Shown here in pieces: positions 14,917 to 33,617 of a stretch of 64,000 nucleotides of DNA. The notes beneath the pieces are model-generated. The model ran no database searches. It saw only the letters and a program-made list of their open reading frames with translations, and was not told the origin of the DNA. This DNA comes from Tubulanus polymorphus (taxonomy: Eukaryota > Animalia > Nemertea). Each line of letters opens with the position of its first letter. Position 1 is the first letter of the stretch. A program made the translations under genes and the position numbers. The stretch is from contig NC_134034.1 of the NCBI RefSeq assembly GCF_964204645.1, positions 1,361,972-1,425,971 on the forward strand. The letters are read 5' to 3'.

Positions 14917-15250
14917 GAGTGCAATCCTCTATTGTGGCAGTAGTTTATCTCCTATTGCACACTAGCGACACCTGGTGGATCCTGACTTACAACGAGTAGA
15001 ATCCACTATTGTCGCAGTATTTGATATCCTACCGCACACTAGCGACACCTGGTGGATCTACACTTGTCACAAGTGGAATCCTCTATTGCCGCAGTATTTG
15101 ATATCCTACCGCACACTAGCGACACCTGGTGGATCTACACTTGTCACAAGTGGAATCCTCTATTGCCGCAGTATTTGATATCCTACCGCACACTAGCGAC
15201 ACCTGGTGGATCTACACTTGTCACAAGTGGAATCCTCTCTGCCGCACTAG
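14917..15250. repeat. ~77-bp satellite family C (ccaccaggtgtcgctagtgtgcagtaggacatcaactactgcggcaatagaggattccacttgtggcaagtgaggat); other arrays at ~19125-19490, 27645-27950, 33675-33790, 47930-48660, 54070-54530
   Basis: Tandem units visible directly, in both orientations. Confidence 0.9.
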
Positions 15251-18200
15251 CACTGTCCATTGCCTTCGATGGCTCTTTTTGAACTAGATGAATGTTTTTC
15301 TAATAATTCGACCATGTCGGTCATGGCCGCGTGGAAAGCTCGGTTCAGATCGTTAGATTTAGCGCTGTACTGGGACAGGCGTTTGTACCCGCGGCAGTTA
15401 CTGGTCACCGAATAGTCGCTGGTCATGTTATCGATCCAATAGGCTACCTCATCCGACCCACCTCCACCTATCGTATTCGTCGAGTCCTGCGGTATCTGAA
15501 AAAAAAAACATCATCGTGTAAAGACTGGGGTGTGGATAGGGAGCTATGAATAAGCGTTGGTGATTCGTCGCGTCGCGTCCAATGACGCAGAATCTCAATC
15601 GGAAAAGCCGTTACTATTCATGAATTCTAGTAAAATGCAATCGGTAAACTACGGAAGCCCCTAGGTGACATACGAGATAACTTTTTCACAATTTCGACTT
15701 ATTAAGTCGAATTTCGACATAATAAGTCGAATTTCGACTAAATAAGTCGAATTTCGTGTTGATTAAGTCGAATTTCGAGTTAATTAAGTCGAATTTCGAG
15801 TTTTATATTCATGTCGAAATTCGACTTATTAAGTGGAAATTCGACTTATTAAGTCGAATTTCGAGATAATAAGTCGAATTTCGTGTTAATTAAGTCGAAT
15901 TTCGAGTTTTATTTTCATGTCGAATTTCGACTTATTATGTCGAAATTCGACTTAATAAGTCGAAATTATGAAAAAAATTATCTCATATGTCACCTAGGGG
16001 CTTCCGTAGTAAACATCCCCAATATAAAAAACGCTAAAAATGCTACATGTTACGGGGCGGATTGACCGTCACGCGTATAACAACAACTGTAAGTACACTC
16101 AGCGTGACTCCGGTGTTGGATGACGAAGAATTTATACCAGAAGTTAACCATAAATTCGGTCGTTGGTGCAAGCGAGCTACAGGACCTAACTGATCGCAAT
16201 AATATAAACAGTAACAGCTGTCATTTAAGATTATTGAATCCCCGAACTTTATTATTAATGATAATTAATAACGCATCGAGTTTTATTATTAAGTTCTATT
16301 TGTATAATTAGTATATATTTCTAGTAACGGTACTTTTTGGTTTCTTGTATGGTTGCTAACGTTAAGCGGTCTTTATGGCTTTAGGCCTGCGTAAATTGTG
16401 TATACGTTTTCCTCTTCCATGCGAATAAATATTGAATTGAATTGAATTCACGACTGATGGTTCTTTATTTTAACCGATGATTATTGTGTATTTCTACATT
16501 GAATTTATTGAATTGAATTGAATTTATTTTGCATTTCAAAATTACATTGTAAAATAGAAAAATTTACAGGGTTTCGTGTGAATTTTTTTTACAATGTAGC
16601 GCAATTTATTATGAAAATGCAGGAGACCCAGAGAAGTCAAAAACATCTCGATGTATTTTTGTAATATCTTGATAAAGCGATGGGAGTCAATTCAATTTCC
16701 ATTTCCCAAAACTTCCTTCCTTTTAGAAGTGAATCGATTTTGCCCTGGTTTTAGGTATGAATGAACAACGCGTTTTTTAGTATGACTAATTTACTGAATT
16801 CCGTGAAAACCACTAGAAATTTTCACAGATAACATTTTCGATTTGTAAAAGAACCGCCAGGTGTCCCTAGTAGTTAGTCAGTCGTTCAGGTCAAGTCAGG
16901 TTCAAATTTCTTTTACACTTCAATTAAAATCTAATCAACGATTCTGACCGTTGAATGAAATTTGTTTTAACAATTTTGTTTATGAGGGTCTTATGGAGAT
17001 AGGTCTATGTGTCTCGAGTCACTAAGGAGCGTTAACTACGATATAATTTAAACACCGGTCACATAACAACCGGGTCGGTCGTATATATAAAATGGCGGAC
17101 GTTACGTAAGCATACTTACCTGGCACAGAGGTCCACCGTGATCTGGAAGGCGGCGCCTCTATGGCGAGGCCTGTCATTGCACAAAGACTGGTTGACCCAT
17201 ACGATCTCCCCAAATGTGGGAGACTCGGGTGTACAATTTCTGGTAGTGGGGGACTGCGTTCGCGCTATCCCCTCTATTGTCAAAATAAAAACATTTTCCA
17301 CTCGCTCAATATTCTGTAAATGATCAATATTGTTAATTCTGGTTCTATTACAAATGTAAAAATTTCAGACCGCTCTCAGCCAATCAACCAATCTTACAAT
17401 TCGGGTGAACAATTATTGGTAGTGGGGGCTATCCCTTATATAAACAAAATAAACAATCATTCCGTCAAAAGTTTAGTGAAGAACAATGATTATAAGCATA
17501 CAGTGACTGTATGGTACTGATCTGACGCTACAGCCATTTCGTTATCGGCTTCGAATTCAGGAAGATTTATCCCCCTATTCTGACTGATCTGATTTCAAGT
17601 GACATGCGCCGTACTCGGGACGCGGACGAAACAATGGATTTCATTTTGAAATCAGATATCGAAGTACAGATATGATCGGATTATTGATCGAGTTTACAGA
17701 ATATTTTGTCCGGGTCGAAATTTCGGTTCCGATTCGTCCGAACAATAACGAAGATTCGCTATTGAAAGCTCCGAAACCAGGAACGGTTCTACAGTTGCGA
17801 GTTAGAGAGTTAACTCTCCAGTTCAAATGAGTTAATCGTTCAAATTGAACTCTGTGTACATGGATCTCGAGTAGATTTTTGTTCCGATACGGCAATCTAG
17901 TTCCGAGGTCGATATTCGCTATATATTATATTTAACTTACGTTGCTCAGCGCAATTCCATTACAATAAAGCACTTTCTGAGTGAATTCATTTTCGAATTG
18001 GTCGCTCGATGTTTGCATCGCCCGCATCATCAGCTCCAACGCGCAGATATGCATCAACGTACCGCCGTATTTCAAACTCTACATTGAGACAGAGAAACAC
18101 ACAATACAAAATCAAATACATTTTTAATTCTATGATACAATTCTTTCAGCGTGTATTATCATGAACCCAACTTCCGTAACCATTTCCAATGATTTCTCCA

Positions 18201-33300: not shown

Positions 33301-33617
33301 AAGGATTTATAGAGGCGGCCATCTTGTTTGGACCGGGCTATAGACAAATACATCTCGTCTGGACTGATCTTTAGACACAGACATCTCGACTGTTCTGTTC
33401 TACAAATTCGCCTTCGTGAAGGTGTTTGAATAAGTACCCAGTTTTCACTAGAAGCTGCTATTCTTTCTAACTCCGCCTGAGCTTGTCTCGTAACGCTGCC
33501 CGCTTTCAGCATATCGGCTACGTCACGCCTCTTTTCGGCCATCACTTCCGGCGTAGCGTAAACTCTTCGCAATTCCAAAAAATCGTCCAGAACATTCTCC
33601 AGGGGTAGAATCGGCAT
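27350..33617 (-). CDS. Choline acetyltransferase-like paralog B; reading frame intact; no catalytic His; N-terminus uncertain
   Basis: Approximate exons 33438-33617, 32706-32839, 31703-31756, 31160-31334, 30747-30924, 30399-30568, 29873-29973, 28938-29069, 28648-28776, 28397-28526, 28242-28304, 27990-28127, 27350-27559, all phase-compatible. The protein ends ...AFHTAMQEMVELLKRTSTN*. A possible upstream exon lies at 34381-34453. Confidence 0.88.
31945..32339. mobile_element. MITE with short TIRs
   Basis: agctgcgatcacacg ... cgtgtgatcgcggct; its internal segment ~32150-32240 recurs at ~45435-45520. Confidence 0.55.
32898..33122. repeat. 30-bp tandem repeat
   Basis: gtagccatgtttttggaatggtca(g/c)tg(g/a)gg x~7. 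Confidence 0.9.

Follow-up and report, generated by a model that had tools for sequence, protein, structure and literature searches.

The 64,000-nucleotide (nt) window analysed here (NC_134034.1, positions 1,361,972 to 1,425,971; part of contig C10 of the 268-Mb genome of the ribbon worm Tubulanus polymorphus) carries two genes, A and B, of the choline/carnitine acyltransferase family (PF00755), both on the minus strand. Judged by their sequences, they are a real and selected branch of this family that lacks the catalytic His. We consider it about an even bet (probability roughly 0.5) that their products are mitochondrial pseudoenzymes which bind coenzyme A (CoA) or acyl-CoA and act as a buffer, sensor or scaffold. 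The RefSeq protein XP_074659510.1 is identical to part of gene B, while XP_074659509.1 spans exons 2-12 of gene A. Both carry automatic names as choline acetyltransferase (ChAT)-like or carnitine acetyltransferase (CrAT)-like proteins, and both are partial and run into intron 12; their joins match exons 5-12 as defined here. Exons 5 and 6 score above the Pfam threshold, and PF00755 is found in both RefSeq models. No literature on either accession was found. A search of the T. polymorphus genome returned no further copy of A or B apart from an orphan exon 7, and no orthologue was found outside the species among 50% representatives and 90% clusters, a weak negative since most ordinary ChATs, too, escaped these word-based searches. 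The pair is so far known from one ribbon worm.

The catalytic residue of the family is His343 in CrAT and His324 in ChAT (PMC11852590; PMC5701137). In T. polymorphus, the ChAT gene (contig C4) and both His exons of the CrAT gene (contig C7) encode it at codon 15 of a 101-nt exon which runs from phase 0 to phase 2. Exon 7 of both A and B is likewise a 101-nt exon with AG and GT ends on the minus strand, at the coordinates and with the translations given in an earlier note on this DNA. The equal length and phase fix the register without gaps, and codon 15 is ACG (Thr) in A and GTC (Val) in B. The ungapped score of these exons against the ChAT exon is significant by shuffling (p<=0.0002), and human ChAT matches A over 163 residues without a gap up to E323, so that H324 falls on T238 of A. 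In a 51-row alignment this column is His in 50 of the 50 other rows. The claim in the earlier note that neither gene retains the catalytic His is upheld by the column and the fixed register; in the EHxxxD/E motif of active O-acyltransferases, the His is replaced by Thr in A and by Val in B. The possibility, also raised there, that transcripts include a different, His-containing exon was checked across the window and no such exon was found: a profile of the His exon matched only three His-less copies, and a scan of introns 6-8 yielded one unrelated chance frame. The His is present in each of the five divergent CPT1 duplicates that the genome carries at another locus, so the loss is not a genome-wide artefact. 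In the literature searched, no His-less choline/carnitine acyltransferase, active or not, has been described, and no work on His-to-Ala mutants or pseudoenzymes of the PF00755 family was found.

The remodelling extends well beyond the His. Only 28 of 64 near-invariant family columns are retained in A, and the same number in B, compared with 54 of 65 in ChAT and 57 of 69 in CrAT, and the lost positions are concentrated in the substrate tunnel. Besides the His, they include the two acids that flank it (E and D, now D and E respectively), the Asp of SPD and the Glu of YES (each found in all 50 other rows), GRT with the Arg that comes next, and the first of the two Ser in STS; where the family has SPD, YES and GR(T/V), A and B read SPH, Y(S/T)Y and DNM. 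In CrAT, the basic pair that contacts the CoA phosphate is Lys419/Lys423 (PMC11852590). This basic pair persists in both genes (as R/K), together with NRWxDK, Tyr452, the xxH His and the second Ser of STS; in B core numbering K423, Y452, H517 and S552 are all present. The second Ser of STS, which we take to be the oxyanion-hole Ser, lies at its conserved distance from the intron. The pattern agrees with the description given previously, namely SPD>SPH, YESA>YSYA/YTYA, loss of GR(V/T)D, xxH>LLH/LMH, and retention of the second Ser of STSQ and of both basic residues in the CoA helix. By exon, scores against ChAT are high for exons 1, 5 and 6 and about 0 for exons 2, 11 and 14.

The encoded fold appears to have survived these changes. 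Modelled with AlphaFold from the 51-row alignment, exons 2-12 of A reached a predicted template modelling score (pTM) of 0.74, with ChAT and CrAT as their best fold matches (Z about 26), and the 28 top Foldseek matches were all ChAT, CrAT, CrOT or CPT2. A model from the structure Atlas matched a ChAT cluster with a TM score of 0.82; single-sequence folding gave a predicted local distance difference test score (pLDDT) of 33, and an Atlas search with the last exon of gene A gave no usable match. Over the modelled exons, the products thus have the two-domain choline/carnitine acyltransferase fold. Exon 8 adds a His-rich loop of 25 residues with three His common to A and B. This loop and the MHYH stretch both have a pLDDT below 50 (residues 263-268 and 378-392). 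The suggestion in the earlier note that a relocated His (SPH or MHYH) takes over catalysis gained no support, as SPH occupies the structural Asp position of the CoA site and MHYH lies in a low-confidence region; at that confidence, a relocated catalytic His is neither demonstrated nor excluded. The EH of exon 8 is exactly 18 codons and 2 nt before the donor, the same spacing as the catalytic EH in ChAT, which we treat as coincidence. The idea that exon 8 arose from the His exon by duplication and truncation was rejected, since whole-exon similarity is not significant (p 0.08-0.35) and exon 7 has no donor fitting that register. A and B share the three His although the synonymous sites of this exon are saturated; they might form a metal site, or their conservation might be coincidental.

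Since there is no general base and the residues that hold the acceptor are gone, canonical His-catalysed O-acyl transfer by either protein is very unlikely on the established mechanism. Persistence of the CoA end of the tunnel and of the oxyanion Ser in both copies favours a CoA-binding pseudoenzyme. The same residues might instead serve neofunctionalised enzymes with His-independent chemistry, in which acyl-CoA is bound and the retained Ser stabilises the tetrahedral intermediate. Such enzymes could acylate a more reactive acceptor, such as an amine for which no general base is needed, or hydrolyse the thioester, with different acceptors for A and B; help might come from the Glu at position D328/E347, now without its Arg partner, or from a His of exon 8 or 11. 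We regard this as somewhat unlikely. It would explain why both proteins keep the acid at His+4 along with Y452, the oxyanion Ser and the xxH His, and why they have several new His in common. Exons 2, 13 and 14, which form the pocket, differ most between A and B, while the scaffold exons are homogenised, as diverging specificity predicts, and the five CPT1 duplicates with remodelled acceptor pockets point to specialised acyl chemistry in this genome. However, no His maps onto the catalytic column, the His insert and MHYH are low-confidence loops, and the helix that begins at the active site leads into exon 8 at its distal end. Fewer than half of the invariant positions survive, and no active His-less member of the family turned up in the literature searched. 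More specifically, the proposal that ChAT in palaeonemerteans gave rise to mitochondrial proteins with a new His-independent acyl-CoA reaction (e.g., N-acylation in specialised metabolism), the acceptors of A and B being different, must be considered unlikely.

Comparison of A with B indicates that the duplication is old and that selection has continued after the loss of the His. The proteins are 72% identical, but this figure hides a mosaic along the genes. Exons 1, 5, 6, 9 and 11 and the 3' half of exon 4 are near-identical even at synonymous sites, partly along with flanking intron, and the pooled proportion of synonymous differences (pS) is 0.14 for exons 5, 6, 9 and 11. Exons 3, 7, 8, 10, 12, 13 and 14 are saturated, with a pooled pS of 0.78 and a proportion of nonsynonymous differences (pN) of 0.27; these are simple Nei-Gojobori counts for two sequences, over exon groups picked after inspection. 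The near-identical tracts are best read as later gene conversion, while the saturated sites mark the duplication as old. In the His exon itself, pS is 0.92 and pN 0.22, which implies that purifying selection persisted after the His had gone, as had been proposed for these genes; most likely the His was lost before A and B separated. The segment encoded by exon 13 lines the acyl and acceptor pocket; it has only 26% identity between the two proteins, yet both retain its xxH His and Ser.

The core of gene B is split into 14 exons, all bounded by canonical splice sites, and reads open over 622 codons; an upstream leader exon brings the total to 15. The earlier note was correct that the frame of B is intact but counted 13 exons, and it missed the leader exons, the gene-conversion mosaic and two 1-nt deletions in gene A. 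Gene A has the same 14 core exons, of which exons 3-14 are clean. Both deletions fall in homopolymers no more than about 600 nt from a GA tract of 500 nt, and this clustering favours assembly error over recent decay of A. In principle, both genes could be decaying duplicates in which the loss of the His marks pseudogenisation, so that neither protein matters now. The two frameshifts in A, the orphan exon-7 copy downstream of A, the incomplete RefSeq models and the failure of the insensitive word-based cluster searches to find an orthologue would all suit such a scenario. Nevertheless, saturated synonymous sites and a low pN in the His-less exon require long selection after the His was lost, the frame and splice sites of B are intact over 15 exons, and the two lesions of A, being confined to homopolymers near the tract with the other 12 exons clean, fit assembly error. 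We therefore hold decay to be very improbable.

The family origin of the pair was approached through gene structure and phylogeny. All 13 intron positions of ChAT occur in A and B, the first of them shifted by two codons. Neither gene has the intron that splits the first core exon of CrAT, both have two introns that CrAT lacks, and exon 4 has the 175 nt of its ChAT counterpart. In a tree on 351 well-aligned columns, A and B were sister to ChAT in 91% of bootstraps (support 91/86) and to CrAT in 3%; the columns were hand-chosen, 15 of 26 rows were omitted from this trimmed tree, and one animal ChAT and one CrAT were included. With all columns their position was unresolved. The stem is very long, at about 3.8 changes per site. 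We consider an origin from ChAT probable. The preference for ChAT over CrAT expressed in the earlier note is thus favoured by the introns and the bootstrap value of 91 but falls short of proof, because approximately unbiased (AU) tests also leave CrAT (p 0.098) and CrOT (p 0.185) standing as possible sister groups. A like pseudoenzyme could have been derived from CrAT, already a mitochondrial protein, and this alternative overlaps the functional readings. In addition to the AU tests, it draws on the identity of B with both ChAT and CrAT (21-22% in each case), on the higher score of the B fragment with human CrAT than with ChAT, and on the presequence, which is the CrAT state. Against this stand the bootstrap values, the agreement with T. 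polymorphus ChAT at three informative introns and in the 175 nt of exon 4, and the score of the longer A model, which is 96 bits with ChAT and 85 with CrAT. Descent from CrAT is accordingly doubtful. Whatever the origin, the locus is not the canonical cholinergic one, in keeping with the earlier view: the leader introns (265 and 451 nt) contain no VAChT, and the recommended search elsewhere placed canonical ChAT on contig C4, where an intronless major facilitator superfamily (MFS) gene in the same orientation lies 21 kb upstream of it. This MFS gene is probably VAChT and would mark the canonical cholinergic locus.

Each first core exon starts directly after an AG, and upstream of it lies an ATG-initiated exon with a phase-0 donor (Table 1). 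The predicted leader peptides are rich in Arg, Ser and Thr, nearly free of acidic residues and amphipathic, with hydrophobic moments of 0.56 and 0.45 compared with 0.68 for the N-terminus of T. polymorphus CrAT. In background sequence, candidate exons of this kind turn up about 0.016 times per kb. On these sequence features, the leaders are likely to be mitochondrial import signals. A role of the products as secreted venom components found no support, as neither leader has the hydrophobic core of a signal peptide and nothing links the genes to toxins.

Taken together, we propose the following course. A duplicate, most likely of ChAT, would have lost the general-base His. In the ancestral A/B gene, the choline and acyl half of the tunnel would then have been rebuilt, and a mitochondrial presequence exon and the 25-residue His-rich insert would have been acquired. 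Tandem duplication into A and B would have come after these changes, with purifying selection acting on both copies and gene conversion patching the scaffold exons. The proteins are predicted to be imported into mitochondria and to act there as pseudoenzymes, holding CoA or acyl-CoA by the retained basic pair and the oxyanion Ser, probably in a restricted tissue such as the gonad. A precedent is provided by the S-Laps of Drosophila, mitochondrial paralogues of an enzyme which are inactive and have structural roles (PMC6388916). They also suggest a further reading, in which A and B are purely structural, ligand-free fillers of a specialised mitochondrion (e.g., that of sperm) and the motif residues are kept for folding. 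Besides this precedent (PMC6388916), the great length of the stem branch (3.8 changes per site), the tandem arrangement, the presequence-like leaders and the poorly supported annotation are in line with gonad-restricted paralogues; but retention of the basic CoA pair and the oxyanion Ser in both copies suggests a ligand, and we judge a ligand-free role improbable.

Several observations weigh against a mitochondrial CoA-binding pseudoenzyme. CoA binding is deduced from two basic residues, and the Asp/Glu pair that shapes the CoA site is altered. The retention of the oxyanion Ser in an exon 13 that is otherwise 26% identical also fits an enzyme with new chemistry. The leaders of A and B have no significant alignment with each other (p 0.25), their splicing is predicted, and the criteria behind the background rate of candidate exons were set after the leaders had been seen. 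The structural model covers exons 2-12, without exons 0, 1, 13 and 14. Gene A has two frameshifts in the current assembly, and RefSeq models that are partial and run into intron 12 suggest little RNA support.

Table 1. Features of genes A and B and associated elements (positions in the window)
Feature	Position	Strand	Remarks
B exon 0	33883-33999	-	Leader of 39 codons from an ATG, resembling a mitochondrial presequence; Ser/Thr-rich with one acid, net +3; phase-0 donor, frame continues into exon 1; predicted splicing
B exon 1	33438-33617	-	LPxLP motif to NW
B exon 2	32706-32839	-	Strongly remodelled tunnel-lining segment
B exon 3	31703-31756	-	54 nt, same length in ChAT and CrAT
B exon 4	31160-31334	-	175 nt, same length in T. 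polymorphus ChAT
B exon 5	30747-30924	-	
B exon 6	30398-30567	-	NRWxDK motif at its end
B exon 7	29873-29973	-	Catalytic-His exon; Val in place of His, codon 29931-29929 (GTC)
B exon 8	29489-29563	-	Novel, 75 nt; no ChAT or CrAT counterpart; three His common to A and B; found in RefSeq model P0001
B exon 9	28938-29069	-	Interdomain linker
B exon 10	28648-28776	-	SPD>SPH; basic CoA-phosphate pair retained
B exon 11	28397-28526	-	YES and GR(V/T) motifs replaced
B exon 12	28242-28304	-	63 nt, same length in ChAT
B exon 13	27990-28127	-	138 nt, same length in ChAT; xxH His and second Ser of STSQ retained
B exon 14	27350-27559	-	Contains stop codon
A exon 0	25650-25751	-	34-codon mitochondrial-presequence-like leader; net +5, no acid; predicted splicing
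A exon 1	25020-25198	-	179 nt; 1-nt deletion in G run near 25080
A exon 2	24529-24652	-	Apparent second 1-nt deletion near 24560 (T or G run); adjoins GA tract
(CT/GA)n tract	24005-24512		About 500 nt; A intron 2, beside both lesions; strand not assigned
A exon 3	23314-23367	-	
A exon 4	22931-23105	-	
A exon 5	22236-22413	-	
A exon 6	21731-21900	-	
A exon 7	20838-20938	-	Catalytic-His exon; Thr in place of His, codon 20896-20894 (ACG)
A exon 8	20284-20358	-	Novel 75-nt exon
A exon 9	19578-19709	-	
A exon 10	18906-19034	-	
A exon 11	18677-18806	-	
A exon 12	18536-18598	-	
A exon 13	17941-18078	-	Protein 26% identical to B exon 13
U1 snRNA gene	17112-17274	+	Within last intron of A, opposite strand to A
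A exon 14	15247-15495	-	Contains stop codon
Orphan copy of A exon 7	12670-12769	-	98 exon bases identical; without acceptor; downstream of A stop; belongs to no complete gene

Further observations concern the surroundings of the pair and other members of the family. The orphan exon-7 copy sits in a local duplication which also contains a U1 small nuclear RNA (snRNA) gene (12068-12230); both lie between duplicated plus-strand gene pieces at 9097-14298, which are 93% identical over 644 nt and encode a Cys-rich product, PAN/apple-like by eye. On the minus strand, 7 kb upstream of B, an intronless open reading frame of 576 amino acids (41060-42790) was read as a putative aminergic (5-HT1-type) G protein-coupled receptor. 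Elsewhere in the genome, five tandem divergent CPT1 copies stand beside the canonical CPT1 (C1:23184000-23212000). All retain EHSW, their carnitine-pocket motifs are rebuilt (YEAS to xQPT or xEPT; GIDRHLF to NYPRHIF), and they may be acyltransferases that use new acceptors. Another CPT1-like gene, also divergent (C12:538600-543100), has its EHSW motif intact. The two 101-nt catalytic-His exons of CrAT (C7:3854889-3855716) mark the only difference between RefSeq isoforms X1 and X2, consistent with mutually exclusive splicing. On a contig of 110 kb, CPT2 has its first core exon in five tandem copies (C31:78500-90500), either as a true repeat or as an assembly artefact.

The interest of the pair lies in the invariance of the His in every other aligned family member and in the fact that no His-less choline/carnitine acyltransferase appears in the literature searched. 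If the interpretation is correct, a selected, ChAT-derived mitochondrial pair without the His would be a neurotransmitter enzyme recycled into a non-neural role. If a His-independent reaction were found instead, it would be the first His-free catalytic mechanism in the family, as far as the literature searched shows. The weight of either is limited by its basis in the sequence of one species. With its complete reading frame, gene B makes it possible to test directly what the fold does when catalysis is gone.

Among known systems, ChAT (PDB: 2FY2-2FY5, 1Q6X) is like A and B in the fold (Z about 26 for A), in its 13 intron positions, in the equal lengths of exons 3, 4, 7, 12 and 13, and in NRWxDK, ACxNQ/F, the basic CoA pair, the xxH His and the oxyanion Ser. 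Unlike ChAT, which is cytosolic/nuclear, A and B have a presequence-like leader and an extra 75-nt exon, they lack the catalytic His and a nested VAChT, their SPD, YES and GRVD motifs are replaced, and the identity is about 21%. CrAT (PDB: 1NM8, 1NDB; in T. polymorphus, the gene on C7) shares the fold, most intron positions and an N-terminal leader of mitochondrial type. In contrast to CrAT, A and B have no equivalent of His343, have lost those of Ser454, Thr465 and Arg518, which bind the carnitine carboxylate, and have no C-terminal SKL; the CrAT exon-1 intron is missing and introns absent from CrAT are present. Sensors or scaffolds with an acyltransferase fold include CPT1C, E3BP and the X-domain of nonribosomal peptide synthetases. 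CPT1C retains its His, while E3BP and the X-domain, which lack the catalytic His, belong to other families of the chloramphenicol-acetyltransferase-like fold. The sperm leucyl aminopeptidases of Drosophila (PMC6388916) resemble A and B as lineage-specific enzyme duplicates with altered catalytic residues; they are mitochondrial and have been demonstrated to be inactive and structural, traits that A and B are predicted to share at least in part. They differ in having an unrelated fold and a demonstrated expression in testis (PMC6388916), a gonadal site being a prediction for A and B.

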